62,085 nt of DNA from Thecamonas trahens ATCC 50062 (Eukaryota; Protista; Apusomonadida): NCBI RefSeq assembly GCF_000142905.1, contig NW_013657604.1, forward strand, positions 1 to 62,085, written 5' to 3'. Every line of letters starts with the position of its first letter. The stretch's first letter is position 1. A program made the position numbers and the translations under genes. Positions 23,891 to 43,318 of the stretch are shown here, piece after piece. The notes under the pieces were generated by a model, which had not been told where the DNA came from, did no database searches, and saw nothing but the letters and a program-made list of their open reading frames with translations.

Positions 23891-23917
23891 GGACGACGAG
23901 AGACGCTCAGCGTTACA
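23891..23917 (-). promoter_or_regulatory. ECF-type promoter upstream of SHOCT-copA operon
   Basis: TGTAAC-N16-CGTCC. Confidence 0.65.
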
Positions 23918-24206
23918 GTGACGGGGATTCACAGGCAGTGGCCGCCGGGCGGGCGGACTGAGGCGGCAGAGATCGTCTGAAGCCCTTTGGGAGCCTCGCC
24001 TGCCGTGCCTGAACAGGCGTAGAGCGAAGGCGGAACAGCGGCACTCGGCCCGAAATCGGCTGCCGATCTTCCATAGATCGGTCGTTCGAAACCCTACAAA
24101 ATTGCGTCCCGGATACTCGTAAAGGTCCTCTGCAAGGGACGCATCGCTCACGCTTTTACGACGATCCGTTCTTCGTCTGACGTCACAGGTCTGCGGCTAC
24201 GTATCC

Positions 24207-24413
24207 TTACCGGCCGATGGCTGCGAGAAATAGGCCAGTGGAGGAGGAGTATCGTTCCGGCGCTGTAAGAAAGAGCTTGTGACAGCCCTCCGAGCAGAAA
24301 AAATACGCCCAGCCCTCACGCTCCTCGTGAGCGACGGCCTTTTCGGGCGTCAGGCGCATGCCGCATACCGGGTCGGTGACCACTACGTCTTTTTCGGGTT
24401 CGAAGCCGGCCAT
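24207..24413 (-). CDS. YHS domain protein
   Basis: DPVCGM, YFFCSEGC..F..APERY; coupled to fabI. Confidence 0.85.
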   Translation of the reverse strand: MAGFEPEKDVVVTDPVCGMRLTPEKAVAHEEREGWAYFFCSEGCHKLFLTAPERYSSSTGLFLAAIGR

Positions 24414-25195
24414 CAGTGAAACACCATCCCTTCGATGTGAAAGCCCGCGTCGACGTAGAGCGTTTCCCCGGTGATGGCGCTCGTATAATCGCTCGCCAGC
24501 ATAAGCGCCGTACGTCCCACCTCGCAGGCGTCCACCGTGCGCCGCAGCGGTGCCTTGCGGACGGTCTCATTCAATAGTTCGTCGAAATGCTCGATGCCCG
24601 AGGCGGCGCGTGTCGCGACCGCCCCGGCCGAAATCGCGTTCACCCGGATCGCCTTGCCACCGTGTTCATGGGCCAGGTAGCGTACAGACGCTTCAAGGGC
24701 GGCTTTGACTGGCCCCATGACATTGTAATGATCGACCACTTTTTCTGCGCCGTAGTAGCTGAGCGTCGTCAAGCTGCCACCTTTGTCCATGAGCGGCTCG
24801 GCGAGCTTCGCCATACGGATGAAGGAGTGGCACGAGATAAGCATCGATTCAGCGAAGCCTTCTCCCGAACAATCGGTCAACCGGCCATGGAGATCTTCCT
24901 TACGGGCCCACCCGATCGCATGAAACAGAAAATCCAATCGGCCCCATTTCTGCTCGATCTCCCCGAAGACGGCCTCCAATTGTCCCGGCTCGGCGACATT
25001 GCAGGGCAGGAAAAGTTGCGCGTCCACCTGTTGCGAAAGCGGCTCAACAAAGGGCTTGGCCTTGTCGTTCAGATAGGTGATGGCAAGATCGGCGCCGGCG
25101 TTCCGAAAATGCTGGGCCGCCGACCAGGCCAAACTGTGTTCGTTGGCAATTCCCACCACCAACCCCTTCCGGCCTTTCATATCGATGAGTTCCAT
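24413..25195 (-). CDS. fabI: Enoyl-ACP reductase
   Basis: GIANEHSLAW, YYGAEKV..YNVMGPVKAALE. Confidence 0.92.
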   Translation of the reverse strand: MELIDMKGRKGLVVGIANEHSLAWSAAQHFRNAGADLAITYLNDKAKPFVEPLSQQVDAQLFLPCNVAEPGQLEAVFGEIEQKWGRLDFLFHAIGWARKEDLHGRLTDCSGEGFAESMLISCHSFIRMAKLAEPLMDKGGSLTTLSYYGAEKVVDHYNVMGPVKAALEASVRYLAHEHGGKAIRVNAISAGAVATRAASGIEHFDELLNETVRKAPLRRTVDACEVGRTALMLASDYTSAITGETLYVDAGFHIEGMVFH

Positions 25196-25307
25196 TTTTT
25201 GCGCTTGCTCCTTTCTCCGGCCAGGCGGGCCAGGCGCGATCCGTCTCGCCGCGCACGATATTATTCGGGACCAGACATAGCTGCGGACGACAGGGTCACA
25301 GCCTGGG

Positions 25308-27026
25308 TCAGGGCATCAGCACATAGGTGCCGGGCGCTTCGCCCAGCCGCCGATAGCCCTTGCGCGCCGCCCCCAGGCCAGGGGGCTTAACGGGTTCACC
25401 CGAATGGTTGCTAAGCCACCCTAGCCAACAGGGCCACCATGAACCCTCATGGTGGGTGGCCCGCGCCTGCCAGGTGTCAGGGTCCAGGTAGGCCGCGAGA
25501 TCATCGTGGGTGGCGATCTGGTGACGACGCCGGGTGTTGCCAGGTGGGCTCACAATGCCGGCATTGTGGCCGCCATTGGATAGTACGAAGGTAACATCAG
25601 CATTGGTTTGGCTGTGGATCTTGTAAACCGACCGCCACGGCGCGACATGGTCCGAGAGCGTGCTGACCGCAAAAATCGGAATGCGGATGTCATGCAACGA
25701 CACCGGGCGACCGTCGACGCAATAGCGTTCGTCCGCCAGATCATTATCGAGGAACAGCTGCCGGAGATATTCGGAGTGCATCCTGGCAGGCATGCGCGTG
25801 GCGTCAGCATTCCACGCCATCAGGTCGAACATCGGTCGGCGCTGTCCCATGAGATAATTCTGAACCATGGCCGACCAGATGAGGTCGTTGGAGCGAAGCA
25901 GCTGGAACGTGCCGGCCATCTGCTTGGTATCGAGACAGCCCTGCTCGGCCATGATGTCCTCAAGAAAGCTGACCTGGGCCGCGTCAATGAACAGCATCAA
26001 TTCGCCGGCTTCCGTGAAGTCCGTCTGCGCGGCGAAGAGGGTCATGGTTGCCAGCCGGTCGTCGCCATCGCGGACCATGGCCGCCGCAGCAATCGATAAG
26101 AGCGTTCCACCGAGGCAGTAGCCGACGCCGTGGACGCGGCTTTCCGGCGCGATAGCTGACACCGCGTCGAGCGCGGCCATGACGCCCAGCCGGCGATAGT
26201 CCTCCATACCAAGGTCGCGATCTTCGACCGTCGGATTTTTCCAGGAGATCATGAAGACCGTGTGACCCTTCTCGACCAAGTATTTCACCAGCGAGTTCTC
26301 GGGGCTAAGGTCGAGGATATAGTATTTCATGATCCAGGCAGGCACGATCAGGATAGGCTCGGGATGAACCTTATCCGTCGCCGGCATGTATTGGATCAGT
26401 TCGATCAATTCGTTACGGAAAATCACTTGGCCCGGTGTAACCGCCAGGTTGTCGCCGACCGCAAACCGTTCCGTGCCGGCAGGTGGCCCCCCACGGACCG
26501 CGCGTTGCCAGTCCTCGAAGAAGTTCACCGCGCCGCGTACCAGATTTTGGCCCCCGGTATCGAGGGTCTCCTTCAGGACCTCGGGGTTGCTCGACGGAAA
26601 ATTCGCAGGCGACATCATATCGAGCAACTGCCGGGCAACGAAGGAAACGACCTCTTCATGGTGCCTGGAGACGCCGGAGATGCCGGTTGTGGCGTTGTGC
26701 CACCATTGCTGGGTCAGGAGAAAACCCTGATAGATCGCGTTATATGGCCATGCCTGCCACGGATCACCGGCAAAGCGTTTGTCCTGCGGCAGGGGCTCGA
26801 TGCAGGCCTCGCAATGAGGATCCGAGCAAGCCCGTGAACAGTATTCCAGATAGCGCGCCCATTTGCGGGCGGCCTTCCGAACTAGTTCTATTTGCTTGTC
26901 GGGCGACATGACGAGATGCTGCGCCCAGTCCGTATACGCTTGAGCAAGCGCCACGGGCGACACACCGGCGGTGATCTGCCCGAGTGTCGCGTGGAGAGGT
27001 TGATCCAGGGATAAACCCCTTCCCAT
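25308..27026 (-). CDS. phaC: Class I PHA synthase; possible 5' frameshift from ATG 27093
   Basis: PAWIMKYYILDL, GYCLGG, WNAD, DHVAPW, GGHNAG, GSWW. Confidence 0.92.
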   Translation of the reverse strand: MGRGLSLDQPLHATLGQITAGVSPVALAQAYTDWAQHLVMSPDKQIELVRKAARKWARYLEYCSRACSDPHCEACIEPLPQDKRFAGDPWQAWPYNAIYQGFLLTQQWWHNATTGISGVSRHHEEVVSFVARQLLDMMSPANFPSSNPEVLKETLDTGGQNLVRGAVNFFEDWQRAVRGGPPAGTERFAVGDNLAVTPGQVIFRNELIELIQYMPATDKVHPEPILIVPAWIMKYYILDLSPENSLVKYLVEKGHTVFMISWKNPTVEDRDLGMEDYRRLGVMAALDAVSAIAPESRVHGVGYCLGGTLLSIAAAAMVRDGDDRLATMTLFAAQTDFTEAGELMLFIDAAQVSFLEDIMAEQGCLDTKQMAGTFQLLRSNDLIWSAMVQNYLMGQRRPMFDLMAWNADATRMPARMHSEYLRQLFLDNDLADERYCVDGRPVSLHDIRIPIFAVSTLSDHVAPWRSVYKIHSQTNADVTFVLSNGGHNAGIVSPPGNTRRRHQIATHDDLAAYLDPDTWQARATHHEGSWWPCWLGWLSNHSGEPVKPPGLGAARKGYRRLGEAPGTYVLMP

Positions 27027-27096
27027 CGGTTCGTTGCGAGGCGTTGCCAGCGCGGTTTGCTCCGTTCGTATTTTCGTTGGATGGTGCCCCCATGGT

Positions 27097-28119
27097 TCAC
27101 GCTCCCATCGGACAGCACGCGGCTTCAGGTTGAGCCGCGCAATGAATGGCCGATTCCGATTCTCCTTGTTGCAACTGCTGCGACCGAGGCAGCGCAGGTT
27201 GATGCATCAGGACGGCGAGCGCCAGCGCCGCCAACCGGGCGGCCGGCGGATCGGCGCGGGAGCTGAGCACCACCGGCGCGGCGAGGCCCATGACGACGCC
27301 CGCCGCCGTGGCGCCGGCCAGATATTCGAGATTCTTGGCCAAGATGTTGCCGGAAACGAGATCGGGGACCAGCAGGATATCGACATCTCCGGCGACCTCC
27401 GAGACGATGCCTTTCTCGCGGGCTGCGTCGGCTGAGATGGCGTTGTCAAAAGCCATCGGGCCATCGACGATCGCACCTGCAATCTGGCCCCGTTTGGCCA
27501 TCAAAGCGAGACAGGCCGCGTCGAGGGTCGATGCAATGGCCGGATTGACCGTCTCGACCGCCGACAACACAGCTGCCTTCGGTGCTTCTATGCCAAGGAG
27601 CGTGAAAAGTGCGATGGCGTTCTCAAGAATCTGCGCTTTCGCGTTGAGGTCCGGCATGATGTTGATGGCCGCGTCCGTGATCGCGAGGAGCTTCGGATAG
27701 GCTGGAATGTCGACCATGAAGACGTGGCTGACGCGGCGACCTGGGAGTCTGAGGCCCTGGTCCGTGTCTAGCAGGGCCCGCATGAAGGCATCGGTGTGAA
27801 TGTGACCTTTCATGACCGCGTCGGCATCGCCGTTTCGGACGAGATCGACACCGGCGCGGGCTGTCTCGGCGTCGCTCTTTGCGGATACGATCGCAGCCCG
27901 GTCGATCTCCACATTGGAGGAGGCTGCGCAGGCCAGAATCGCGTCGGGATCGCCGACGAGCCGGGGCTCGATCAGGCCAAGCGCCACGGCTTCCTGAACC
28001 GTTTCGAGGACAAGGCCTTGATCGGCGGCGACCACGGCGACGCGGATCGGCGTCCGCTCCTTCGCGCGTGCGACGAGATCTTCGAGAGTGGCGGGATGAT
28101 CAACCATGGGCTCGCACAT
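27097..28119 (-). CDS. Phosphate acetyl/butyryltransferase
   Basis: MKGHIHTD, ITDAAINI.P, DGPMAFDNA, SRAD. Confidence 0.9.
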   Translation of the reverse strand: MCEPMVDHPATLEDLVARAKERTPIRVAVVAADQGLVLETVQEAVALGLIEPRLVGDPDAILACAASSNVEIDRAAIVSAKSDAETARAGVDLVRNGDADAVMKGHIHTDAFMRALLDTDQGLRLPGRRVSHVFMVDIPAYPKLLAITDAAINIMPDLNAKAQILENAIALFTLLGIEAPKAAVLSAVETVNPAIASTLDAACLALMAKRGQIAGAIVDGPMAFDNAISADAAREKGIVSEVAGDVDILLVPDLVSGNILAKNLEYLAGATAAGVVMGLAAPVVLSSRADPPAARLAALALAVLMHQPALPRSQQLQQGESESAIHCAAQPEAACCPMGA

Positions 28120-29338
28120 TCTCCTTTCCGGATGCCCTCAGAATGTTTTGAGTATGGCGCGCGATGGCCAACTCCTCGTCAGTCTTGAAGGCTTCGATGA
28201 GCACACCGCTGTCGTCGGTCGAGACAACGCGTTGTTGACCGGCGTTCCGCTCCGCATCAAGCGTGAGACCGAGATAATCGAGCCCCTCGCAGATGCTGGC
28301 GCGGATTTCGGGCGAGTTAGCGCCAATACCGCCGGTGAAAATCAACCGATCGAGACCGCCGAGCGCGGCCGTCAGGCCAGCCAGGTGCCGGCGTGCATGG
28401 TGGCTGAAGAAGTCGATCGCCTCCGCCGCCTCTGGAACGTCCCGCCGGGCCAGGAGATCGGCCATGTTGCGGCTCAAGCCGGACAGACCGAGCAGGCCCG
28501 ATTCGGTGTAGAGCACCTGTTGAAGGGCGTCGGGAGTCATTTGCTTTTCGATCAGGAGATGCAGGAGAACGCCGGGATCGAGATCGCCGGGACGCGTCCC
28601 CATGGGAAGGCCGGCAAGTGTACTGAAGCCCATGGTGGTCTCGACGCTGTGTCCGTTCCTGATCGCCGCCATCGACGCGCCGTTGCCGAGATGGGCAACA
28701 ATGATTCGTTCCTCCGCAGCTGCGTCGCCGTCACGCCGGCGTACCTCGCCGATGACATACTCATAAGACAGGCCGTGAAAACCGTAGCGCCGGATACCCT
28801 CTTGCTCGAAACGGCGCGGCAAGCCGGTCAAGCGCGCCACACGTGACAAGCCATGGTGAAACGCGGTGTCGAAGCAGGCGACCTGCGGGAGATCGGGCCG
28901 TTGTCGTCGGACCGCCGTGATGCCGGCCAGGTTATGGGGCAGATGGAGGGGCGCGAGCGGGACCAGTTGCTTCAGCCGGACCTCAAGCGCGGGCGTGACC
29001 ACAAGCGAACAATCACAGCCCTCTCCGCCATGTACCAACCGGTGGCCAACGGCAACGGGTGTCGCTTGCGTGTCGCGATCCTCGGCCCAGTTCAGAAGCA
29101 GGTCGAGGGCCGCGTCATGGTCGGGAATTGCCCGCATTTCATCGACCAGTGCCGTCCCGTCCGCTGCCCTCACAAGGAAACGTCCTTCGTCGAAGCCAAT
29201 GCGTTCCAGAGAACCCGACCAGGTTCGCTGGGGCTCGGCGGGAGCCGCGTCGAACAGCGCGAACTTGACGCTGGAGGATCCACTATTGATGACCAGGATC
29301 GCGCCATCAACGGCCATCGTTCTTCGCCTCGCCTTCAT
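28100..29338 (-). CDS. ackA: Acetate/propionate kinase
   Basis: INSGSSSVK, HRLVHGG, FDTAFH, YGFHGLS, HLGNGAS, TDEE. Confidence 0.93.
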   Translation of the reverse strand: MKARRRTMAVDGAILVINSGSSSVKFALFDAAPAEPQRTWSGSLERIGFDEGRFLVRAADGTALVDEMRAIPDHDAALDLLLNWAEDRDTQATPVAVGHRLVHGGEGCDCSLVVTPALEVRLKQLVPLAPLHLPHNLAGITAVRRQRPDLPQVACFDTAFHHGLSRVARLTGLPRRFEQEGIRRYGFHGLSYEYVIGEVRRRDGDAAAEERIIVAHLGNGASMAAIRNGHSVETTMGFSTLAGLPMGTRPGDLDPGVLLHLLIEKQMTPDALQQVLYTESGLLGLSGLSRNMADLLARRDVPEAAEAIDFFSHHARRHLAGLTAALGGLDRLIFTGGIGANSPEIRASICEGLDYLGLTLDAERNAGQQRVVSTDDSGVLIEAFKTDEELAIARHTQNILRASGKENVRAHG

Positions 29339-31130
29339 TCCCTACTGTTCCCGCCGCGGATGTCTCCTGGCCGTAAAGCTGCCCGAACGCCTGTTCGTAG
29401 CCGGCGTCGCGCCACTCGCGGACCTGCTCGATCGCCCCGGAAAATTCGGCGAAAAGCTCCCGTTCCCTTTCCAGCAAAGGATGATCCTCGGGCAGCGGTT
29501 TCCGCGTCTTGGCAATACCATCTGCCAGAGCCGCGACACCGCGCATCCATGGGTTGAACGACTCGGAAAACAAGTAACGGCTCGTTCGCATCGGATGCAG
29601 CCACTTCAACGACTCCGCGGTCCATGGATTGCTCGCCATCTGAACCCACGGACTGACGAAGCTCCGGTAGAACGCCTCGCCCGCCTCGGAAACAGCCCGC
29701 ACTTGTTCGAATGCCTGGCTTTGCTCCGGAAACTTCAGATCCTCGACCCGCCGCTCGTCAAACCGCACGGTGAATTGCGGCTTGTGGCAGTCGGGGTCGC
29801 CGCTCGGGTTGTCGATCTTCATCTCGTAGAGGCCCGGAGCGAGGGCTTCGATCTCATCGAGGTTTTCGAGAATGGCGCGATGTTCAAGGCGGGCGACCTT
29901 GGCCGACACGAAGATGCCGAGATGGCCCACATGCGGATTGGTCAGATAGACGATCCGTTGACCCGCCTTCTTCAGATCGGCCGTATCCTCATATACGGTC
30001 GGAATCCAGCCCAGAGCCTGATGCGGCGGCGTGATGTTGTCTCCGTAGGAGGCAAAGATGACCAACGGATTGCGGATGCGGCGCAAATCGGCGATGCAGC
30101 CGTCGCAGATGCGCATGATGCCCTGTTCCAGCTTGTTGCCGATGAACAGGTTTTCGACGATCGCCAGTATTTCTTCGCGGCTGAGGAAATAGAACCCGTT
30201 CCACCAGCGCTCGAACTCGAGGAAGCGCTCGCTCTCGGTATCGACCTTGTGGAACAGACCGGCGTATTTCTCCCAAATAGCCTTTTCCGGCTTCAGGTTC
30301 TCGAAATTCAGGGCCAGCCACGCGCCATCGAAGCGGCCGTTGCCGAGATCGGCCGTCAAATGCGTGAGCCAGGCGCCGCCGAGCAGTCCTCCGGTCACCC
30401 GCATCGGATTGACGCCGGCCTCGCCTGACCAATAGGACAGCGGCGAGCCGTTCAGCACAGCAGGGCCGACCAGACCCTCACAGTCGGCCGAGAGCAGAGT
30501 CATCGCCCAACCGGCCTGACAGTTGCCGTAAAGGACAGGCGGCGTGCCGGAATGGCGTCCGGCGACCTCCTCCACGAAGCGCCTGAGTGCATGTAACACG
30601 TCGGCCAGTGTCTGGCCGGGCGATGGCTCCGGGAAAAAGATCACGAAATATGTTGGATGCCCCTCGTGGAGCGCCATGCCGACTTCGGAATCGTGCTTGA
30701 ACCCGCCGATCCCCGGCCCGTGCCCGGCGCGCGGATCGACCACGATGACCGGCGGCTTGTCGGGATCGACGCAGTCGTCCCAGCAGTCATCGCCGACTTC
30801 CGTAATCCGCAGGAGCGCATAGTTCGCGGGAGGCTCGAAGCGCCGTGCGTCGAGGATCGTCTCGTATTTGAAGTCGAGCAACGGCGGCAAACCGGCGCGT
30901 TCATGCTCGAGCATATTGTCGGCGCGTTGTCTGAGCGTGTCCCAGAAAAGGATCGTCCGCTGCCAGAGGTCGACCTGGTAGTCGACGAGATCCTGGCCCG
31001 GCAGTCGAGCGTCCGAAGCATCCTCCACACGCTTCTGACGCCGGGCATCCGCCTGGCTTACCAGTTTAAGTGCGGGTGCCCGTTTGTCGCCGGCATCGGT
31101 CGTGGCTTTTTGCCTCTTTGCCGTCGTCAT
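29307..31130 (-). CDS. DUF3141 family alpha/beta hydrolase (PhaC-related)
   Basis: DPRAGHGPGIGGFK, GNCQAG, GDNITPP, GHLGIF. Confidence 0.88.
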   Translation of the reverse strand: MTTAKRQKATTDAGDKRAPALKLVSQADARRQKRVEDASDARLPGQDLVDYQVDLWQRTILFWDTLRQRADNMLEHERAGLPPLLDFKYETILDARRFEPPANYALLRITEVGDDCWDDCVDPDKPPVIVVDPRAGHGPGIGGFKHDSEVGMALHEGHPTYFVIFFPEPSPGQTLADVLHALRRFVEEVAGRHSGTPPVLYGNCQAGWAMTLLSADCEGLVGPAVLNGSPLSYWSGEAGVNPMRVTGGLLGGAWLTHLTADLGNGRFDGAWLALNFENLKPEKAIWEKYAGLFHKVDTESERFLEFERWWNGFYFLSREEILAIVENLFIGNKLEQGIMRICDGCIADLRRIRNPLVIFASYGDNITPPHQALGWIPTVYEDTADLKKAGQRIVYLTNPHVGHLGIFVSAKVARLEHRAILENLDEIEALAPGLYEMKIDNPSGDPDCHKPQFTVRFDERRVEDLKFPEQSQAFEQVRAVSEAGEAFYRSFVSPWVQMASNPWTAESLKWLHPMRTSRYLFSESFNPWMRGVAALADGIAKTRKPLPEDHPLLERERELFAEFSGAIEQVREWRDAGYEQAFGQLYGQETSAAGTVGNEGEAKNDGR

Positions 31131-31465
31131 GGCCGGCCTCCCCGGCCACTGTGCGCGGCAAAGAAATTGTAAAGCGGCGCGAAGACCAGTGCCACATACC
31201 AGCCATAGGCGAAGCTCTCGGCCAGGCCGAGGAAAAAGCTCTGCCAGCTCAGCCAAGTGAAGCCAGGAAGGAGCCGGAACCAGCTTTGATACATCGCCTG
31301 GCCGGGAAACAAAAGGTCGAAGCCGACGCAAAGAGCGAAGGTGACGGCCAGGAAGAGGCCTAGGCTCAAGCCGAGCGCCATCACGGGTATTCTTGAAGCA
31401 GACTGAACCGGCAGGGGCGTCCCCGCGCGCGGCGGCGTCCTCGAAGAGATATTGAGATCAGACAT
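31127..31465 (-). CDS. DUF5676-like membrane protein
   Basis: LLPGFTWLSWQSFFLGLAESFAYGWY. Confidence 0.75.
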   Translation of the reverse strand: MSDLNISSRTPPRAGTPLPVQSASRIPVMALGLSLGLFLAVTFALCVGFDLLFPGQAMYQSWFRLLPGFTWLSWQSFFLGLAESFAYGWYVALVFAPLYNFFAAHSGRGGRP

Positions 31466-31817
31466 GGCGGTCCTCCAACTGGGGCGTCGGCGTCTCGGTC
31501 TTGGCACCGGGTCCGACATATTGCTCGGGCGCAGCCTCAAAGCGCTCCCGGCATTCCCGCGAGCAAAAATAATAAACACTGCCGTCATGGACGCTCGGCT
31601 TGGCCTTGTCGGTACTGACGGTCTTGCCACAGACGGGATCGACGTCCTTGGTTGGGGGAATCCACCGCAACTCCTCGGCATTCTTTTGCCGGCTGTGGTT
31701 CGCATCGCCGTGCTTGGCCTTGCCGTGCCCATGTCCCATGACATGGGCGCCGCAGCCGAAGCGCATCATCACGAAGATGATCACCGCCCAGATCAGGAAG
31801 TAGGAAAGCGCGTTCAT
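31458..31817 (-). CDS. Membrane-anchored YHS domain protein
   Basis: TM + MMRFGCGAHVMGHGH; DPVCGK, YYFCSREC. Confidence 0.85.
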   Translation of the reverse strand: MNALSYFLIWAVIIFVMMRFGCGAHVMGHGHGKAKHGDANHSRQKNAEELRWIPPTKDVDPVCGKTVSTDKAKPSVHDGSVYYFCSRECRERFEAAPEQYVGPGAKTETPTPQLEDRHV

Positions 31818-35199: not shown

Positions 35200-36387
35200 T
35201 CAGGACGTCCGCTCCAAGGTGAGTGCGATGCCCTGCCCGCCGCCGATGCAGAGCGTCACCAAGCCCCGCTTGACCCCATTGCGCTCCATTGCATGCAGGA
35301 GTCGCGTCGTCAAAACGGCCCCCGTTGCGCCGATCGGATGACCGTGGGCAATAGCGCCGCCTTCGACGTTGACGATGTCTTGTTCGATTCCGATCTCACG
35401 CGCGAGCGCAACGGCAATGGCGGCAAAGGCCTCATTGATCTCGACGCGGTCGAGATCGCCAACGCTCCAGCCCGCCCGCTCCAGAGCCTGAAAGACGGCC
35501 GGTACCGGTCCGAGGCCGAACATGCCGGGATCGACCGCGCCCACACCGTAGGAAACCAACCTGGCCATGGGTTTAAGACCGTTCTTCTCCGCCCAAGTCG
35601 CCTCGGCGATTATCATCGCCGCCGCGCCGCTGTTGAGTCCCGGCGCATTGCCAGCCGTAATCGTACCCTCCTTGCGGAAGGCAGGCCTGAGCTTGCTCAG
35701 ACTGTCGAGGGTCGTGTCGGGTCGGTTGTGTTCATCGGCGTCGAATGTGGTCGTCTCCTTACGAGTCTTGAGTTCTACCGGAGCGATCTCTTGCTTGAAA
35801 TTGCCAGCAGCCTGCGCCTCGGAAAAGCGCCGCTGAGAGCGTTCGGCCCAGCGATCCTGATCTTCGCGCGTAATCTGAGCCTTCTTCACCAAGTCTTCCG
35901 TGTGCCAGCCGGAGTGCTCGCTGGAAAAGGCGTCGTTCAGGCCGTCACGGAGCATGCTGTCGTGCATCTGGGCATCACCCATGCGATAACCCCAGCGCCC
36001 GTTTTGAACGATGTAGGGGGCCTGGTCCATGTTCTCCATGCCGCCGGCGACCGCGCAGTCGATATGTCCGAGCATGATCTCCTGGGCCGCCGAGGCGATC
36101 GCCTGAGCCCCAGAGCCGCACACCCGATTGACGGTCATCGCTGGCACGCCAACCGGAATGTCAGCACCGATTGCCGCCTGGCGTGAAGGGTTCATTCTGG
36201 CGCCCGCCTGGATCACCTGTCCCATGACCACGGTTTGAACGAGCGAGGGATCGACGCCCGACCGCTCGATCGTCGCGCGGATCGCCGTTGCGCCGAGCTC
36301 GGTCGCCGGCAGATCTTTCAAGGATCCTCCATAGGTGCCGATCGCGGTGCGCACGGGGGTACAAAGCATAACCTGCTTGTGAGTCAT
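35200..36387 (-). CDS. phaA: Acetyl-CoA acetyltransferase (beta-ketothiolase)
   Basis: NRVCGSG, NEAF, GHPIGATG, LCIGGGQG. Confidence 0.93.
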   Translation of the reverse strand: MTHKQVMLCTPVRTAIGTYGGSLKDLPATELGATAIRATIERSGVDPSLVQTVVMGQVIQAGARMNPSRQAAIGADIPVGVPAMTVNRVCGSGAQAIASAAQEIMLGHIDCAVAGGMENMDQAPYIVQNGRWGYRMGDAQMHDSMLRDGLNDAFSSEHSGWHTEDLVKKAQITREDQDRWAERSQRRFSEAQAAGNFKQEIAPVELKTRKETTTFDADEHNRPDTTLDSLSKLRPAFRKEGTITAGNAPGLNSGAAAMIIAEATWAEKNGLKPMARLVSYGVGAVDPGMFGLGPVPAVFQALERAGWSVGDLDRVEINEAFAAIAVALAREIGIEQDIVNVEGGAIAHGHPIGATGAVLTTRLLHAMERNGVKRGLVTLCIGGGQGIALTLERTS

Positions 36388-36438
36388 CGGTGTGCTTTCC
36401 TTCTTGTCTCGCTTGAGTGGATTGGTTCCTGATTCCGC

Positions 36439-37161
36439 TCAGATCAGGTACTGGCCGCCATTGACGGTCAGTGTCGAACCCGTGATGAAACCCGCGTCGT
36501 CGCTCGCCAGAAACACCACGGCCCGGGCAATTTCCTCGGGTTGGCCGAGGCGGCCGACCGGGATCTGGGCGACGATGCTATCGAGAACCTTAGGGGGAAC
36601 GTCGGCGACCATGTCGGTCTCGATATAGCCCGGGGCAATGGCGTTGACGGTGACGCCTTTGGCGGCGCTCTCGAGCGCTAGCGCCTTGGTGAATCCCAGA
36701 AGACCGGCTTTCGCCGCCGCATAGTTGGTCTGGCCCAGTTGGCCCTTCTGGCCATTAATCGAGCTGATGTTGATAATGCGGCCGTAACCGCGCTCCCGCA
36801 TCGGGGAAATGACGGTGCGGCACATAGTGAAACAAGCGGTCAAATCGGTATCGATTACCGCGCGCCAGTGCTCTGACGTTAATTTATGGAGCATAGCGTC
36901 GCGGGTGATCCCCGCATTGTTCACGAGAATCTCGACCGGGCCATATGCGGTGGTGATTTTCGCGACGGCGGCGGCGCAGGCCTCGTCATCGGCCACATCC
37001 CATTTGAAAACAGGGATGCCCGTTGCCGCCTTGAAGTCTTCGGCCGCCAGATCGTTGCCGTGGTAGCTAGCGGCGACCGTATAGCCCGCATCGCGCAGGG
37101 TTCTGGCAATCGCGGAGCCGATTCCGCGCGTGCCGCCGGTCACCAATGCCGTTCGTCCCAT
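36439..37161 (-). CDS. phaB: Acetoacetyl-CoA reductase
   Basis: TGGTRGIG, NNAGITRD, GQKGQLGQTNYAAAKAG. Confidence 0.93.
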   Translation of the reverse strand: MGRTALVTGGTRGIGSAIARTLRDAGYTVAASYHGNDLAAEDFKAATGIPVFKWDVADDEACAAAVAKITTAYGPVEILVNNAGITRDAMLHKLTSEHWRAVIDTDLTACFTMCRTVISPMRERGYGRIINISSINGQKGQLGQTNYAAAKAGLLGFTKALALESAAKGVTVNAIAPGYIETDMVADVPPKVLDSIVAQIPVGRLGQPEEIARAVVFLASDDAGFITGSTLTVNGGQYLI

Positions 37162-37316
37162 GATTTCAACCCCCGTAAGAGATACCAGCCGCTCTGCAAC
37201 GGCCGTTGCAGCCTTGTGCGAAAACTGCAGATTGCGTTGTGTCGCGTTGGGCAAGGTCTTTGATCACGTTCATTCCTCCTGACGGGCTCAATCCTTCGGG
37301 GTCCTCCATGTCTAGA

Positions 37317-37343
37317 AGACGATGCCCGGCTGGCTCCGTTACA
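37317..37343 (-). promoter_or_regulatory. ECF-type promoter upstream of phaB-phaA
   Basis: TGTAAC-N16-CGTCT. Confidence 0.7.
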
Positions 37344-37417
37344 CAAGGAGCGCTGATCGCATAGTCGTTCGACGGGAAGGAAAGCTCCGACCCGCTCCGG
37401 TGGCCGTGAAGGATTTG

Positions 37418-37445
37418 TGTAACTTTCGGCGACCCATTCACGTCT
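37418..37445 (+). promoter_or_regulatory. ECF-type promoter, divergent, upstream of sigma4-only ORF
   Basis: TGTAAC-N17-CGTCT. Confidence 0.6.
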
Positions 37446-37514
37446 TATGTGACGCCAATGAAAATCCGGGTGGGCACACCGTCCCGGTTTTGAGCAGCGG
37501 AGGAGCGAGGCCAA

Positions 37515-37976
37515 GTGATCGAGACGATGGAAGATGGAAACCGCGCCGCTTCAAAAGCCGGCCTGATTGATCCAGATAACGAACAGCTCGTTCATCCAGA
37601 AGGGTTTTTAACCCCAAGGTGCCAGCCATGCCGACGCCAGCGCGACAGCCTTGATGGTGGCGTTTTGGCGGCACACAAAGGCCGGAACGGAAATAGCGAC
37701 GGGGAGGGAGATTCTGGGTGTCCACCGGACTCGGACGGCTCCGACGACACCGAGATGGAGGCAATTCTGCAGGAGTTTATCGAAACGCTTATGCGTCTCT
37801 TGGAACCCCGCTACGCCGAGGTGGTGTGGCGCGCGGAAATTCTGAATCATCCGCCCACCAGGATCGCCACAGATCTCGGTCTCAGCGAACAGATAGTCAT
37901 CAGACGACTTCAGCTAGGCCGCCGGACCCTCCTACACCTCGTCATGTTGACGCTGGAACCCCCTCTTAAGGTTTGA
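37515..37976 (+). CDS. Sigma region 4-only protein related to the CorE-like sigmas
   Basis: LEPRYAEVVWRAEIL..IATDLGLS..RRLQLGRRTL aligns with their sigma4; no sigma2, no Cys tail. Confidence 0.6.
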   Translation: MIETMEDGNRAASKAGLIDPDNEQLVHPEGFLTPRCQPCRRQRDSLDGGVLAAHKGRNGNSDGEGDSGCPPDSDGSDDTEMEAILQEFIETLMRLLEPRYAEVVWRAEILNHPPTRIATDLGLSEQIVIRRLQLGRRTLLHLVMLTLEPPLKV

Positions 37977-38290
37977 TGCCCAAACATTTTGACTGTTCCG
38001 TGCTGGGAAATAAAACGGCAATCAAGAATTTACTTGGAATCGACAGTAGCGACAGATAAATTGGCAATAACTCTCGAGTTTCTGCGAATTTACCCCTGTC
38101 CCGTCCAATCAAGGGATGAGATAGGGGCTGATCTCGAAGAGGGGAGTGACAGGTGGTCTGATGCGATGCAATGATCCTGGATCCTTTCACGCTGAAGCCG
38201 GTGGTAGCCGCGGGAGCGTCTGCCTCGCCGTGGCGCGAAATGAACGCAGAACTTTGTAGTCAAAGAGTACGTGAAGAGAGGATAGAATCA

Positions 38291-39226
38291 ATGAGCCAAG
38301 CCCATAGCGGCCATGCCGGCCACATGCCGTCAAGCGGACGGGGAATGGTGATCTCGGCTTGGCTGACCGGCATCTATTTCGTAATCGAGATGGGCATCGG
38401 CCTCTGGACGGGCTCGATCGCGGTGATTTCCGACGCCTTCCACACCTTCTCGGCGGTGGGTGGCGTACTAGTCGCGATCGTCGCCGCCAAGCTTGCCCGC
38501 CGCCCCGCCGACGAGGATCGCAGTTTCGGCTGGTACCGCGCCGAGATTATCGGAGCGCTCGTCAATGGCGGCTTCCTTCTGGGCATGGCGCTCATCGTGA
38601 TCGTAATGGGTGCGATGCGGCTGTCCGACCCGATCGAGCTGCCTACCGGGCCGATGCTTTGGGCCGCGGCGGGCGGGCTTTTCACCGAGTTTATTTCGCT
38701 CGGCTTGATCTGGAAGCAGAGCCAGAGCGACCTGAACGTGAAAGGCGCACTTTGGCACATCATTCAAACCTTCGTCGGCAGCCTGCTCATTATCGTGACG
38801 GCACTCGTGATTCAATTCACCGGGTTCCTGCTGATCGATCCGATCCTTGGTATGGGCTTCGGCTTCGTGCTGCTCTGGGCCAGCTGGGGCATTCTGCGCG
38901 ACGCTGCTCACCTATTGATGGAAGGCACACCGGCCGACGTCGGCCTGTCCGATGTCACCGGCGCGCTGGAGCAGGTCGAAGGCGTTGCGAATGCCCACCA
39001 CGTTCATGCCTGGGCTCTGACCAGCGGCCGTTACGTCTTCTCCGGTCATGTGCGCGTCGCCGACGAGACCGATCCCCAAGCGGTCCTGGCGGCAGCGCAC
39101 GCCATGCTCAAAGAAAAATTCGGATTCTTCTTCGTCACCTTGCAGGTCGAGGACACCTGCCTTGATGAGTCCGGGGCTGAAGCCATCGACGTGACGCGCA
39201 CGGCAGGGGGCCGCAGCCGGAAATGA
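38291..39226 (+). CDS. Cation diffusion facilitator (CzcD/ZitB-like)
   Basis: SDAFH, FGWYRAE, LNVKGALWH, HHVHAW. Confidence 0.9.
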   Translation: MSQAHSGHAGHMPSSGRGMVISAWLTGIYFVIEMGIGLWTGSIAVISDAFHTFSAVGGVLVAIVAAKLARRPADEDRSFGWYRAEIIGALVNGGFLLGMALIVIVMGAMRLSDPIELPTGPMLWAAAGGLFTEFISLGLIWKQSQSDLNVKGALWHIIQTFVGSLLIIVTALVIQFTGFLLIDPILGMGFGFVLLWASWGILRDAAHLLMEGTPADVGLSDVTGALEQVEGVANAHHVHAWALTSGRYVFSGHVRVADETDPQAVLAAAHAMLKEKFGFFFVTLQVEDTCLDESGAEAIDVTRTAGGRSRK

Positions 39227-40137
39227 AGATCGTTCTCCTGCTCCTGCTGATCACGCTGTCGGAGGCCACAATCGGCGTGTTCGTGAAGCTCACCGACGGA
39301 CTGATCCCGATCCAGACGCTGAATTTCTACGCTCTGAGCTTCGCGGCCGCCTTTCTGATGGCGGTCATGCCGCTGGCGACCGGCCGGCCCTTGCGCTTTC
39401 CGAAAGGCAACCTGAAAGACACCGCGATCATCGGCGTGCTGATCGCCACGCAGATCAGCGTTTTCAACTACGCCATGACGCTGGTGCCCATCGCCAATGC
39501 GGTGATCTTCTGGAGCGTCGCGCCCTTCTTCGTGTTCATCTTCTCGGCGCTGTTTCTCGGTGAAAAGGCACGCAAGAGCTACATCCTGATCTTCGCCGTC
39601 GCGCTGACCGGTATCGTCCTCGCCAAGCCGCTTGAGGGCGGCCACATGATCGGCAACCTCGTCGCACTCGGCGACGGCGCGATCTACGCCGCCATGGTCA
39701 CCTACATGCGCTACGAAGGAAAGACCGAGGCCGGCAACGACATCGCCTGGTCGATGCTCGCGGGGGCGCTGATCCTGTCGCCAGCGCTCATCCTCGCCGG
39801 CCCCGGCACGCCCGCCGCGACCATCTCCTATGCCGCACTCGGGATGGACCTGCCGGTGATGCTCTGGGCAGCGGGGCTGGGCATCGTCTCGACCGGCTTC
39901 GCCTATTTCGGCATCTCCATCGTCCTCAAGACGCTCAACGCCAATGTCTATGCGCTCGTCGATATCATCGTCTCGCCGGTCGTGGCGTCAACGCTGGGCT
40001 ACCTTATCTTCGCCGAAATCCCGGCGCAGGGCATGATCTATGGTGGCGCATTGCTGCTCGGGGCCGGTTTCTGGTTGACCCGCGAGATGTCGCGCGGCGC
40101 GGAAAACCGGGCCGTTCATCCCTGCCAGTGTGCGTGA
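39223..40137 (+). CDS. DMT/EamA family transporter
   Basis: About 10 TM, APFFV..LFLGEK; ends HPCQCA. Confidence 0.8.
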   Translation: MKIVLLLLLITLSEATIGVFVKLTDGLIPIQTLNFYALSFAAAFLMAVMPLATGRPLRFPKGNLKDTAIIGVLIATQISVFNYAMTLVPIANAVIFWSVAPFFVFIFSALFLGEKARKSYILIFAVALTGIVLAKPLEGGHMIGNLVALGDGAIYAAMVTYMRYEGKTEAGNDIAWSMLAGALILSPALILAGPGTPAATISYAALGMDLPVMLWAAGLGIVSTGFAYFGISIVLKTLNANVYALVDIIVSPVVASTLGYLIFAEIPAQGMIYGGALLLGAGFWLTREMSRGAENRAVHPCQCA

Positions 40138-40254
40138 ACCGAACGGATCAACTCGTGTGAATCCAATCAGCAACGACACGAGACTTGGCAGACAAACGCC
40201 AGTAGGTCGTGATGGTGGTGTCGCGGGACGGATAGACGATGGGATGAAAGTCGA

Positions 40255-41148
40255 GTGACCGTTGGAATCATCGCGCAAATCATTCTGGTCATGTTGCTTT
40301 GGGCTGCCTGCTTCCCGCTGATAACCGTCGGCATTGAATTTGCCCCTCACCTGACATTCGCCACGCTGCGCGCGTTCCTGGCAGGCGCAGCGTTGATCAT
40401 CGTCGCGCTTGCATTGCGGCAGCCCCTGCCCAAAAGTCGTCGAATCTGGACAATGTTGGCCATCGTTGGCGCAGGTGCCACCAGCCTGGGCTTCTTGGGG
40501 ATGTTCCATGCCGCGGAATTCGTTTCCCCGGGCATCGCCACTGTAATCGCCAACACCCAACCGCTGTTGGCGGCGGGCCTGGCGGGTATCATCCTCAAAG
40601 AACAGTTGACCGCGCTGGGCAAAGCAGGCCTTGCCTTGGGCTTTATGGGGATACTCGTCATCACTTCGCCCCAGATACTCACCGGCGGGCAAGAAAATTA
40701 CATTCTAGGAGTAGCCTATATTGTCCTGGCTGCACTCGGCGTCACGGTGAGCAACGTTGTAATTAAACGAATTGCCGGAAACGTCGACGCCCTTATGGCA
40801 ATGGGCCTCCAGTTGCTCATCGGCAGTGTTCCGCTCGCTATTGTCGCCTGGGCCACGGAGGAGCCAACAACGATCCGATGGTCGTTGCCATTTGTAGGCG
40901 CGCTCCTTGTTCTCAGTCTGTTCGGGTCGGCGTTAGTATACTGGCTATGGTTCTCCGTGCTGGAGAAAGCGCCTCTCAACCGCGCGAACGCGTTAAGCTT
41001 CCTGATCCCGATTTTCGGCCTTGCAATGGGCGCTTTGTTTTACGGTGAGACCCTTGGCTGGATGCAGATCGTCGGCATTGTCCTTGCGATTCTTGGGGTC
41101 GTGTTGGTGACGCGCAGAGGGACTAAGCCGGCCAGAATGGCCGGATAA
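40255..41148 (+). CDS. DMT/EamA family transporter
   Basis: About 10 TM, LRAFLAG, NTQPLL..LKE, FLIPIFG..GE. Confidence 0.85.
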   Translation: MTVGIIAQIILVMLLWAACFPLITVGIEFAPHLTFATLRAFLAGAALIIVALALRQPLPKSRRIWTMLAIVGAGATSLGFLGMFHAAEFVSPGIATVIANTQPLLAAGLAGIILKEQLTALGKAGLALGFMGILVITSPQILTGGQENYILGVAYIVLAALGVTVSNVVIKRIAGNVDALMAMGLQLLIGSVPLAIVAWATEEPTTIRWSLPFVGALLVLSLFGSALVYWLWFSVLEKAPLNRANALSFLIPIFGLAMGALFYGETLGWMQIVGIVLAILGVVLVTRRGTKPARMAG

Positions 41149-41408: not shown

Positions 41409-42098
41409 ATGTTTCCAGATCGCCCGATCTTGCCAACTCGGGCCGAGGTTTTGAGCATGACTGTAGCAACACATAAGACGATTAAAACCGACCCACTTTC
41501 CGATGAGCTCGACAACACGTCACGGCCGATGACCCCGGAAATAGAAATGGCACTCACCGACTATTATCACGAATTTCGTCGCTATCTCGTGCGCCGGGTC
41601 GGCGATTCGGTCACTGCGGAGGATGTGCTTCAAACTTTCTGCGTGCGAGTCATCAACAGCGGGACAGTACTTAGGAATAGCGAAAGTGTGGTCGCCTGGT
41701 TGTATACGGTGTTGCGCTCGGTGCTGACCGATCATTACCGCAGTGAGGCTGCACGGCGGCGCCGAAAAGACAGCTACATGCAAGACCAGATGGTATTGGC
41801 CGACGGCCAGGTAGATCTAGCGAACGAGAAAGGCGTTTGCAGCTGTCTTCGAAAGCTTGTGCCGGGGTTGCGCCCGGACTATGCAGAGATTCTTGAACGG
41901 ATCGATCTGTCGGATGAACCGCGTGAACGAGCCGCAGCTGATCTTGGGATCACACCATCGAATGCGAGAGTGCGCCTGCATCGGGCGCGCCAAGCACTGC
42001 GTGTTTCTCTAGCAGCGTTCTGCACCGATTGCTCCGAAGGTAGATTTGACGACTGCACTTGTGAATCAATGCGCGACGGCAAGAGCTGTAGCTTGTAA
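41409..42098 (+). CDS. Second CorE-like ECF sigma factor (start may be further downstream, e.g. 41529)
   Basis: AEDVLQ, AWLY, CSC linker, RVRLHRARQAL, tail CTDCSEGRFDDCTC. Confidence 0.88.
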   Translation: MFPDRPILPTRAEVLSMTVATHKTIKTDPLSDELDNTSRPMTPEIEMALTDYYHEFRRYLVRRVGDSVTAEDVLQTFCVRVINSGTVLRNSESVVAWLYTVLRSVLTDHYRSEAARRRRKDSYMQDQMVLADGQVDLANEKGVCSCLRKLVPGLRPDYAEILERIDLSDEPRERAAADLGITPSNARVRLHRARQALRVSLAAFCTDCSEGRFDDCTCESMRDGKSCSL

Positions 42099-42299
42099 CT
42101 ATCACAAAGTTCTACAACTGCCCTTCTATCGGCGGGCTGAACCGCGCCGGGTTTGCCGAAGGCTTCAACTCTCAAGAGGATGGAGCGATGAAAGAGAACA
42201 AACCCCTACTGACATACTCAGGCTGAAGTGCGCGCGAGGTGATGAGCCCATACGATCTCGAAGCCTTCTAGACTGAGACCGACGCGGGATTCGGCGACG

Positions 42300-42542
42300 G
42301 GATATGAAACTGTTTCCACAGCGTCCTTGTCCACGCTCAGGCCAGAATGCGCCGACTTGATGTCGCGTGTAGAGCTGTTGGGAGATCCGCGGAATCGTGC
42401 GGCAGCGCCTCGGCGCCGACTTGAAGAATGTCGCTGTGCGGCTGTATCACGGCTAAGCAGGCACTGGAAAAGCAGCAGCAGGGGATTTGTTTGTGCCTGA
42501 TCTGCCCGATCCATGGTTTCCTCGACTGCCGCTGTGAAGAGA
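42300..42542 (+). pseudogene. Frameshifted remnant of a CorE-like sigma factor
   Basis: Across frames: LSTLRPECADLMSRVELLGDPRNRAAA / LGADLKNVAVRLYH / AKQALEKQ..CLICPIHGFLDCRCEE. Confidence 0.75.
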
Positions 42543-42543
42543 C

Positions 42544-42628
42544 GGATTGTGCACGGGGCCGGATTGTGCACGGGGCCGGATTGTGCACGGGGCCGGATTG
42601 TGCACGGGGCCGGATTGTGCACGGGGCC
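42544..42628. repeat. Tandem repeat, 5 x 17 bp
   Basis: GGATTGTGCACGGGGCC, five perfect adjacent copies. Confidence 0.95.
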
Positions 42629-42645
42629 GGCAGGTGGGCTGAAGC

Positions 42646-42672
42646 TGTAACGGCGGGCAAGTCGTTCCGTCT
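42646..42672 (+). promoter_or_regulatory. ECF-type promoter upstream of Met-rich protein gene
   Basis: TGTAAC-N16-CGTCT. Confidence 0.7.
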
Positions 42673-42787
42673 GTAAGTCCAGGTGGTTGTGCCTTCGGGT
42701 CACCATAGCGATCCGATGTCCGACGCAGCACCGGTTGCGCCGTCTCCACCCCTACAGCGTCTTTCATCCCAACCAAGGAGACCAGAG

Positions 42788-43318
42788 ATGACAGATTCAA
42801 GAACGATGATACCTTCCAGCACGATGCGTTTGCCGGGTTTGAAAGCTCTCGCCATAGCCGCGGGCCTCACCGTCCTCACCGCGGCAGGTGCGTTGTCGGC
42901 CCAGCATGGAGCAAAGCCACAGCAAGGCCAATCCCAGCAGATGCAGCAGCAGATGCAAGGCGGACCGTCCTTCGAGCGCATGCAGGAGATGATGCAGCAG
43001 GCCCGCGAGACAACAGACCCTGCCGAGCGCCGGCAGCTCATGCGCCAGCACATGCAGATGATGGTCGAGAAGATGCAGGCGATGCACGGCATGATGGGGA
43101 ACATGCCCATGCAGGGCCAGATGGGCGGCCGGATGTCGGGCCATCAGGGATCCGGCAGTCAGGGCATGGGCATGTCCGGGGACATGTCGGACGATATGTC
43201 CGAACGGATGCAGCAGATGATGGGGCGCATGCAAGAGCAGCAGGGCATGATGCAGCAGATGATGCAACAGATGCTCGAACAGCAGCGCATGATGATGGAG
43301 ATGGACGAAGACCGCTAA
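42788..43318 (+). CDS. Secreted Met/Gln-rich protein
   Basis: AAGGAG RBS; signal peptide ending ALSA; about 34 Met in about 138 mature residues. Confidence 0.8.
   Translation: MTDSRTMIPSSTMRLPGLKALAIAAGLTVLTAAGALSAQHGAKPQQGQSQQMQQQMQGGPSFERMQEMMQQARETTDPAERRQLMRQHMQMMVEKMQAMHGMMGNMPMQGQMGGRMSGHQGSGSQGMGMSGDMSDDMSERMQQMMGRMQEQQGMMQQMMQQMLEQQRMMMEMDEDR

Follow-up and report, generated by a model that had tools for sequence, protein, structure and literature searches.

The 62,085-nt sequence analyzed here (the window) is one whole contig, NW_013657604.1, of the 28.7-Mb Thecamonas trahens ATCC 50062 assembly (131 contigs). It contains a metal and polyhydroxyalkanoate (PHA) gene block (~18.9-44.3 kb) that encodes two extracytoplasmic function (ECF) sigma factors, here called sigA and sigB, and in which operons for copper export, PHA-type metabolism, CDF-type metal export and a Met-rich protein each start with a copy of the same candidate promoter (P1 to P5, Table 1). 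The block has a guanine-cytosine (GC) content of ~60% and mosaic flanks of 35-70% GC. Conjugation and defence genes (for a DUF3363 protein, an SLT transglycosylase, ArdC, LuxR, AbiEii and a SIR2-like protein) occupy the left third of the window, and mercury-type and further metal genes the right third. Block proteins are 95-100% identical to those of the cultured strain Thalassospira profundimaris WP0211 and mostly 95-100% identical (lowest 86-92%) to those of a Tepidicaulis isolate and a Rhodobiaceae metagenome-assembled genome. A horizontally mobile metal island carries the block (~18.9-43.3 kb) as its cargo. Because the contig reads as plainly bacterial and its block proteins match the Thalassospira isolate so closely, it probably derives from an associated bacterium.

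Both sigma factors consist of the Pfam domains Sigma70_r2 and Sigma70_r4_2 with no further domain. A CxC motif is found in the linker (VCVCL in sigA, VCSCL in sigB) and both proteins end in a Cys-rich tail, which comprises ~32 residues with four Cys in sigA and follows the pattern Cx2C...CxC with one extra Cys in sigB. In an alignment of 19 homologues, every sequence has the first Cys of the CxC and the first Cys of the tail; the second CxC Cys and two other Cys of the tail are each conserved in at least 90%. Overall identity between sigA and sigB is 41%, and their -35-reading helix is almost identical, which fits the -35 hexamer common to all five promoters. No anti-sigma domain was recognised by Pfam in any scanned open reading frame (ORF) between 18.9 and 44.3 kb. 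The closest curated family of both sigmas was SigZ (TIGR02959) with 88-91 bits, below the cut-off of 169; SigZ has been listed as a member of ECF238, alongside CorE2 (PMC7826278). The CorE-like group is described by a strictly conserved CxC between sigma2 and sigma4.2 (PMC4937300, PMC6851896) and is further defined by an absent anti-sigma factor and a metal gene neighbourhood (PMC4937300, PMC6851896, PMC8999054). The proteins encoded here likewise combine sigma2 and sigma4 as sole domains, the CxC, a Cys-rich extension (21-50 residues, four Cys) and the lack of an anti-sigma factor. By these signature features, compared with the published descriptions of CorE and CorE2, sigA and sigB appear to be of the CorE type.

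Five copies of the pattern TGTAAC-N16/17-CGTC were counted in the window, compared with a mean of 0.03 in shuffled sequences, and none of 100 shuffles reached five. All exact matches (23892-23917, 32375-32400 and 37318-37343 on the minus strand, 37418-37444 and 42646-42671 on the plus strand) are co-oriented with the next gene. The distance to the start codon is ~134 nt for the SHOCT protein gene, 96 nt for the phasin gene, ~157 nt for phaB, 71 nt for the sigma4-only ORF and 117 nt for the Met-rich protein gene. The element carries the marks of an ECF-type promoter, namely AAC in the -35 element, CGT in the -10 element, a fixed spacing of 16-17 nt and co-occurrence with a sigma gene. sigA is the last gene of the P3 operon and sigB the last gene of the P4 operon, and the TAA stop codon of sigA lies inside the -35 hexamer of P2. 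No convincing terminators were found between genes inside the proposed operons, and sigma-70-like promoters and intrinsic terminators showed no enrichment. The N17 spacing of P4 is kept in diverged relatives and may bias this promoter towards sigB. A sixth near-match (43413-43439) was rejected, as it has CGTG for CGTC and lies within a short coding remnant. The short ORF containing it (43389-43541) is located between the Met-rich protein gene and a VTT/DedA gene, and its start presumably resembles the N-terminus of a YdhR-type monooxygenase.

To compare the motif across genomes, 80 loci (1.46 Mb) around sigA homologues in other genomes, with 118 sigma genes, were retrieved with peptide patterns covering the -35-reading helix and the CxC. 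These loci contain 154 exact motif copies; a reversed-pattern control gave 2, and spacers of 12-15 or 18-21 nt gave 3-5. A 16-nt spacer is present at 111 of 118 distinct sites. Bases outside the search pattern are conserved as well (C at -1 in 77%, G after TGTAAC in 84% and T after CGTC in 72% of sites), yielding the extended consensus aC-TGTAAC-G-N15-CGTC-T, with T.T after CGTC. When the sequence between the sigma and phasin genes was aligned for eight diverged hosts, the only long invariant blocks were the -35 element, the -10 element and the ribosome-binding site. In four other genomes (3.6-6.2 Mb), 12 of the 14 TGTAAC-type sites are found in the island (4/4, 3/3, 3/4 and 2/3). The whole 28.7-Mb assembly searched here has 30 sites, five of them in the window contig, and its only two CorE-like sigma genes are both located in that contig. 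An earlier note, made from the window sequence alone, had described two intact ECF sigmas with a CxC and a Cys-rich tail, no recognisable anti-sigma factor, and five oriented sites at the starts of operons whose genes it listed. Pfam domains and translations bear this out for the sigmas, Pfam-scanned block ORFs for the missing anti-sigma factor and the domain assignments for the gene content, and all five sites were recovered with exact coordinates for the CGTCY form. The note had named a lack of motif enrichment as one of the grounds for abandoning the idea; the motif is instead strongly enriched, both in the window and in relatives.

The motif lies directly upstream of 17 of the 118 sigma genes, which is a classical sign of ECF autoregulation. 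Sigma genes were collapsed at 85% identity into 60 lineages, and in at least 15 of these the TAA stop codon of the sigma gene lies inside a TGTAAC or TGTAAT -35 element, sigma gene and next promoter thus forming one cassette. Recurrent motif targets in relatives include cyclopropane-fatty-acid synthase (23 loci; divergent from the sigma gene, e.g. L058:8528-9844, where labels beginning with L denote loci), P-type ATPases (15), DUF2933 proteins, a multicopper oxidase (L050:3971-5848) and a CYTH-CHAD protein (L041:6683-8269). The CHAD domain is linked to polyphosphate granules. P-type ATPases and a multicopper oxidase are also targets of Myxococcus CorE (PMC3107203).

Traces of further cassettes can be seen in the window. 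The TAA stop codon of sigB (42094-42099) also lies within a TGTAAC hexamer, with no CGTC at 16-17 nt beyond, and looks like a sigma-promoter cassette minus its -10 element. Downstream, a third CorE-like sigma gene has left a decayed C-terminal end, which leads into 5.2 perfect tandem copies of a 17-bp unit (42543-42630); this repeat ends 16 nt before P5. The sigma remnant, the repeat and the sigB stop codon together suggest that the cassette has been repeatedly built and broken. Tandem CorE-like sigma genes were observed in L093 and L096, and also in L084, L095, L097 and L107. The order in L093 and L096 is sigma, promoter, sigma, promoter, copA/P-type ATPase, an arrangement suggestive of a sigma cascade in two steps. 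In L084 and L097, only the copy ahead of the ATPase gene is present.

A phasin- or YHS-led operon is located directly downstream of the sigma gene in 15-16 of the 60 lineages, with the strict motif in between in 13. This operon encodes DUF3141, a kinase, a transacylase, PhaC, FabI and YHS proteins, its completeness varying by lineage. A P-type ATPase gene follows the sigma gene in ~13 lineages. In the sigma tree, 15 PHA-linked lineages fall into one clade of 27 (Shimodaira-Hasegawa-like approximate likelihood ratio test, SH-aLRT, 92) and the sister clade is copA-linked. PHA-linked hosts belong to the Thalassospiraceae, Sneathiellaceae, Aurantimonadaceae, Rhodovibrionaceae, Sphingomonadales, Methyloligellaceae, Parvularculaceae and Halomonadaceae. 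Even in Hyphococcus and Parvularcula (~50% sigma identity) the gene order is kept, with a TGTAAT-N16-CGTCT variant before the phasin gene. Loci of the Roseobacter group (L100-L110, ~4800-8000) show a sigB-like sigma gene, followed by the motif and by DUF3141 and FabI genes. PhaC, AckA and Pta gave no tblastn match there, and the core that is conserved after the promoter may thus consist of DUF3141 and FabI and not of PhaC. A plasmid of Halomonas sp. KO116 (L111, NZ_CP011053.1 2863-29292) carries a same-strand string of copA, YHS, DUF5676, DUF2933, ICMT, NhaA, DUF3141, kinase, transacylase, phaC and YHS genes. In the Tepidicaulis island copy (L033:10608-10640), the P2 spacer has a 2-bp insertion (N18) which might weaken the promoter. 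Based on these comparisons, membership of the PHA genes in the regulon, beyond mere neighbourhood, appears well supported. The pairing of metal export and PHA genes is conserved in many marine bacteria. At the level of sequence, we regard three points as established: the promoter, its association with the sigma genes, and the export and PHA operons as conserved members.

Table 1. Candidate promoters and genes of the metal/PHA block, given as positions in the window.
Feature	Position	Strand	Basis or remarks
P1	23891-23917	-	TGTAAC-N16-CGTCC; heads SHOCT-copA-YncE
P2	32374-32400	-	TGTAAC-N16-CGTCT; heads phasin-YHS-DUF5676-DUF3141-kinase-phosphotransacylase-phaC-fabI-YHS
P3	37317-37343	-	TGTAAC-N16-CGTCT; heads phaB-phaA-channel-permease-sigA
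P4	37418-37445	+	TGTAAC-N17-CGTCT; divergent from P3; heads sigma4-only-CDF-EamA-EamA-sigB
P5	42646-42672	+	TGTAAC-N16-CGTCT; heads Met-rich protein gene
sigA, CorE-like ECF sigma	32396-33010	-	CxC at 112-114; C173, C176, C184, C186
sigB, second CorE-like ECF sigma	41409-42098	+	CxC; tail with 5 Cys
Decayed C-terminal end of third CorE-like sigma gene	42430-42630	+	Translation tail CPIHGFLDCRC, sigA-like
ICMT/PEMT-like membrane methyltransferase	18896-19711	-	Pfam PEMT and ICMT; possibly last copA-operon gene
YncE-like beta-propeller with N-terminal signal-like segment	19855-20931	-	Pfam YNCE
CopA, P1B-1 type Cu(I)/Ag(I) ATPase	20983-23484	-	Pfam E1-E2_ATPase, Hydrolase, YHS, HMBD
SHOCT-domain membrane protein, first gene after P1	23423-23758	-	Pfam SHOCT
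Small soluble YHS protein, last PHA-operon gene	24207-24413	-	Pfam YHS, E 1e-14
FabI, enoyl-ACP reductase	24413-25195	-	NCBIfam NF005717 equivalog, 406 bits (cut-off 337)
PhaC, class I-like PHA synthase	25308-27026	-	Pfam PhaC_N, PHBC_N; lipase box GYCLGG
Phosphotransacylase, Ptb or 'enoyl-CoA hydratase-Pta' type	27097-28119	-	Pfam PTA_PTB
Acetate/propionate/butyrate-family kinase	28100-29338	-	Pfam Acetate_kinase, E 1e-108
DUF3141 alpha/beta-hydrolase-fold protein	29307-31133	-	Pfam DUF3141, E 4e-206
DUF5676-like small two-helix membrane protein	31127-31440 (approximate)	-	ORF translation; homologous L111 stretch annotated DUF5676
Membrane-anchored His-rich YHS protein	31458-31817	-	Pfam YHS
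Phasin	31833-32279	-	Pfam Phasin_2, E 1e-11, above cut-off
APC-family permease	33118-34431	-	Pfam AA_permease_2
Small two-transmembrane-helix ion (K+) channel	34533-35042	-	Pfam Ion_trans_2
Beta-ketothiolase, PhaA/BktB type	35200-36387	-	Pfam Thiolase_N, Thiolase_C; TIGR01930 above cut-off
PhaB, acetoacetyl-CoA reductase	36439-37161	-	TIGR01829, 357 bits (cut-off 302)
Sigma4-only ORF, without CxC or Cys tail	37515-37976	+	Weak Sigma70_r4_2 match below cut-off
CDF (CzcD-type) exporter	38171-39226	+	Pfam Cation_efflux and ZT_dimer
Two EamA-family transporters	39223-41148 (39223-40137, 40255-41148)	+	Pfam EamA
Secreted Met/Gln-rich protein	42788-43318	+	37 Met in 176 residues; followed by GC-rich hairpin

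The P2 and P3 operons contain the components of a poly(3-hydroxybutyrate) (PHB) pathway, namely a thiolase, an acetoacetyl-CoA reductase, a PHA synthase with a GxCxGG motif and a phasin. The best NCBIfam match of PhaC is TIGR01838 with 558 bits; as the class I cut-off is 623, the protein is class I-like and not a certified member. The phosphotransacylase matches NF006045 above cut-off through its C-terminal half. In DUF3141, C205 (in the nucleophile elbow GNCQ[AG]G), D365 and H404 are invariant in 11 homologues, a Cys-Asp-His combination that would correspond to the triad type of PHA synthases rather than to that of serine hydrolases. The protein also shows a weak match to PHA_synth_III_C, and its Atlas neighbours are named PHA synthase or depolymerase. 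A sequence search returned no relative of DUF3141 in the PDB, and an AlphaFold model built with 11 sequences was weak (mean predicted local distance difference test score, pLDDT, of 59), Foldseek returning only generic alpha/beta hydrolases for it (TM ~0.3). The fold class is confirmed, and the invariant Cys, Asp and His residues together with the weak profile matches suggest a PhaC-like protein. Since a butyryl-type phosphotransacylase, a kinase, FabI and the PhaC-like DUF3141 stand in the same operon, PHA synthesis is a possible output, and the flux may differ in direction and purpose. Between P3 and phaB, an ORF of ~35-47 codons (37165-37270) with a strong AGGAGG ribosome-binding site and a hairpin alongside (37186-37205) could encode a leader peptide; it is present only in near-identical island copies, hence its conservation is uninformative.

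CopA possesses the CPC, YN and MxxSS motifs and carries its YHS and HMBD domains at the N-terminus. In several relatives, SHOCT and CopA genes stand as a pair behind the motif, a YncE-like gene is found downstream of copA in relatives (annotated as YncE family protein in L111), and ICMT genes flank copA on the Halomonas KO116 plasmid as well. The sigma4-only ORF shares 31% identity with the linker and sigma4 region of sigB, and homologues of it (55-58% identity) are located behind the motif in L038 and L040, as is a homologue of the Met-rich protein in L098. Outside the block, positions 50001-52000 have 35% GC with a strong AT skew amid window sequence of 60-70% GC, and the long ORFs over this segment gave no Pfam match. 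Several DNA runs of one study, labelled as different organisms, contain the complete stretch.

Eleven public runs recorded as RNA contain part or most of the stretch, and assembled contigs of four of them were placed on positions 32001-38000. In run X2, a 6.4-kb contig with a depth of 61 extends from within phaC to 32352, 23 nt past the -10 element of P2, where Illumina adapter sequence follows. The upstream contig of the same run covers sigA at a depth of 6, a tenfold step compared with the 61 downstream. A further X2 contig of 3.9 kb (33406-37301) stops 17 nt past the -10 element of P3, and the gap between the divergent promoters (37302-37373) is uncovered. These contig ends are suggestive of starts at P2 and P3 and of co-transcription of each operon.

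We consider it probable that the block constitutes a metal-sensor sigma regulon in which two CorE-like sigmas and one shared promoter control export and PHA modules on a mobile island. Each sigma would be inactive until its CxC and four tail Cys bind metal, as in Myxococcus CorE and CorE2, and metal would be the activating signal by analogy with experiments on these two factors (PMC3107203, PMC4937300) and in view of the metal genes in the regulon. The most likely signal for sigA would be copper, given its clade with copA, YHS and PHA genes, and for sigB Zn, Cd or Co, given its place in a CDF operon like that of CorE2. Because the two -35-reading helices are nearly the same and the promoter hexamers are shared, either metal should activate all modules together. 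Firing of all five promoters would then supply CopA and the CDF protein for export, the Met-rich protein for binding in the periplasm, and the PHA/acyl-CoA module. Positive feedback would follow from the position of each sigma gene at the end of a motif-driven operon, presumably by read-through. With low confidence, we suggest that the PHA module acts as a carbon, reductant and ATP buffer, where acetyl-CoA and NAD(P)H would be directed into polymer when metal poisons respiration and ATP could be returned through the phosphotransacylase and kinase, supporting efflux. A more speculative idea, which we view as doubtful, is that the PHA-type operon, instead of serving normal carbon storage, is itself a metal-defence device, in which polymer or short 3-hydroxybutyrate chains sequester or help to move copper, or in which ATP formed at substrate level powers the copper pump once respiration is poisoned. 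Here, the metal-activated sigma would switch on a polymerase pair of PhaC and DUF3141, the membrane YHS and DUF5676 proteins and the kinase-phosphotransacylase pair. If true, the operon would be a portable module for 'metal-induced granules' that has spread through marine bacteria.

A number of observations weigh against such a regulon. The retrieved loci are biased towards sigmas with this promoter, since the patterns used to find them took in the -35-reading helix and the CxC. Neither a CorE-like sigma nor the motif was found in the KO116 plasmid stretch, so that its metal-PHA linkage is independent of this regulator and other regulation exists. No site lies directly upstream of sigA or sigB, even in relaxed scans (one mismatch, spacers of 15-18 nt), and autoregulation in the window therefore depends on read-through. 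RNA run X1 shows even coverage across the region, and the RNA ends in X2 are those of contigs assembled from a single run, which prove no start, strand or level. In the AlphaFold model of sigA, the two domains are confident while the Cys tail has a pLDDT of ~50, and the model says nothing about a metal site. The assignment of copper to sigA and Zn/Cd to sigB comes solely from gene neighbourhood. More generally, the links between sigma and metal, sigma and promoter, and sigma and polymer are sequence-based predictions.

The 26-27-nt element itself could be something other than the promoter of these sigmas. It might be a structural repeat of the mobile element at which recombination or insertion takes place, or it might be recognised by a host sigma factor such as EcfG. 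EcfG, the alphaproteobacterial general-stress factor, has the consensus GGAAC-N16/17-CGTT, which the outline of the element resembles, and the element is indeed found on mobile islands. However, conservation is confined to the two hexamers and a few flanking bases at a strict spacing of 16-17 nt with a freely varying spacer sequence, all five window sites aim at a start codon 71-157 nt off, and sites in whole genomes cluster mostly in islands instead of being distributed across a stress regulon. In addition, the element precedes sigma genes themselves in 17 cases and is found beside sigma homologues in Marinobacter and Halomonas, which are not known to possess EcfG. We consider either origin highly improbable. 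With regard to the signal, the Cys cluster might sense thiol or redox stress (oxidants, electrophiles) instead of a specific metal, in the manner of zinc-binding anti-sigma (ZAS) domains, with the PHA genes serving as a reductant sink under oxidative stress and the exporters responding only indirectly. The CxC and Cys-rich tail have been called reminiscent of ZAS redox-sensing domains (PMC6851896), the CorE response depends on the redox state of copper (PMC3107203), and the cyclopropane-fatty-acid synthase (23 loci) and CBS-BON proteins encoded behind the motif point to general envelope or stress functions. This explanation nonetheless seems unlikely to us, given that the targets found repeatedly are almost all specific to metals (Cu(I) ATPases, CDF, multicopper oxidase, and YHS, DUF2933 and Met-rich proteins), that loss of the tail or the CxC inactivates CorE and CorE2 and does not activate them, and that metals are needed for their DNA binding (PMC3107203, PMC4937300).

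The PHA genes might also be passengers, P2 serving the membrane YHS and DUF5676 metal proteins and co-transcription resulting from an accident of island assembly with no role in tolerance. In L054, L056, L057 and L067 it is YHS, not phasin, that comes first after the promoter, phaB-phaA are found behind the motif in few lineages, and the same PHA module exists elsewhere with PhaR and without metal genes (bioRxiv 10.1101/2025.03.12.642780). Against this stands the persistence of the sigma-promoter-PHA order down to ~50% sigma identity, across many host families and through repeated transfers, as well as the presence of YHS genes at both ends of the PHA genes. The Halomonas plasmid unites copA and PHA genes even without this sigma, and DUF3141 and FabI are kept behind the motif in Roseobacter loci where PhaC, AckA and Pta were not detected by tblastn. 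We therefore judge a mere passenger role to be improbable and favour a metal-sensor regulon that includes the PHA genes. The earlier note had proposed a motif-headed regulon spanning metal export and a full PHA set, a view now supported by sequence comparison, genome-wide counts and the phylogenetic footprint.

With this block, a large marine branch of the CorE-like group gains a regulon and a promoter that is sharply defined. The regulon extends past metal export to storage-polymer and acyl-CoA metabolism and would supply a genetic basis for scattered reports linking copper and PHB, while placing the uncharacterised DUF3141, DUF5676 and YHS proteins in a testable setting. A sigma stop codon that forms the next -35 element yields a very small, anti-sigma-free and apparently metal-switched cassette of interest for biosensors and metal-induced bioplastic production. 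These predictions are directly testable, as the cultured strain T. profundimaris WP0211 carries near-identical block proteins.

CorE (copper) and CorE2 (cadmium/zinc) of Myxococcus xanthus are CorE-like ECF sigmas of the former group ECF44, now within ECF238 (PMC3107203, PMC4937300, PMC8999054). sigA and sigB share with them the two-domain architecture, the linker CxC, the C-terminal Cys-rich extension with four conserved Cys, the lack of an anti-sigma factor and the metal gene neighbourhood. Targets of the family, including P1B ATPases and multicopper oxidase, recur as well, a CDF gene lies beside the sigma gene as with CorE2, and a sigma4-only paralogue is encoded nearby (compare MXAN_0974). 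In contrast to CorE and CorE2, the sigmas described here come from alpha- and gammaproteobacterial hosts and are encoded on a mobile island. The sigA tail is short, with only four Cys and without the extra Cys that, according to the literature, delta-proteobacteria and acidobacteria keep. Further differences are the presence of two sigmas with one promoter type in one block, each encoded at the end of a motif-driven operon, and the position of the sigma stop codon, which in many relatives falls within the following -35 element. The regulon also contains a complete PHA set, which has not been reported for CorE or CorE2.

A Pseudomonas island module, phaP-DUF3141-eutD(pta)-ackA-phaC-fabI-phbB-paaJ, has been described as a mobile class I PHA module (bioRxiv 10.1101/2025.03.12.642780). 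Both systems combine phasin, DUF3141, phosphotransacylase, kinase, PhaC, FabI, reductase and thiolase on transferred islands. The Pseudomonas module comes with PhaR and an efflux pump, whereas no PhaR-type ORF was found among the scanned block ORFs, and the operon described here differs in starting with an ECF promoter, in being bracketed by YHS proteins and in adjoining copA. In Cupriavidus metallidurans CH34, copper stress is linked to phasin, PhaC and PhaZ levels, and PHB has been proposed as an energy reserve for recovery (PMC11886801). That link is a proteomic correlation for chromosomally encoded and differently regulated PHB, with no dedicated metal sensor or promoter described. Searches of open-access papers gave none tying a CorE-like or other ECF sigma to PHA genes, and reviews of metal-responsive ECF factors do not mention such a link, in line with the earlier note, which knew of no regulon of this kind. 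Its label of a candidate new system is too strong, as the novelty lies in the content and architecture of a regulon whose sigma factors belong to a known class. The sigma class, the logic of ECF promoters and the mobile PHA module were each known singly; what is new, as far as can be told, is the way they are combined, together with the defined promoter and the cassette whose stop codon lies in a promoter.

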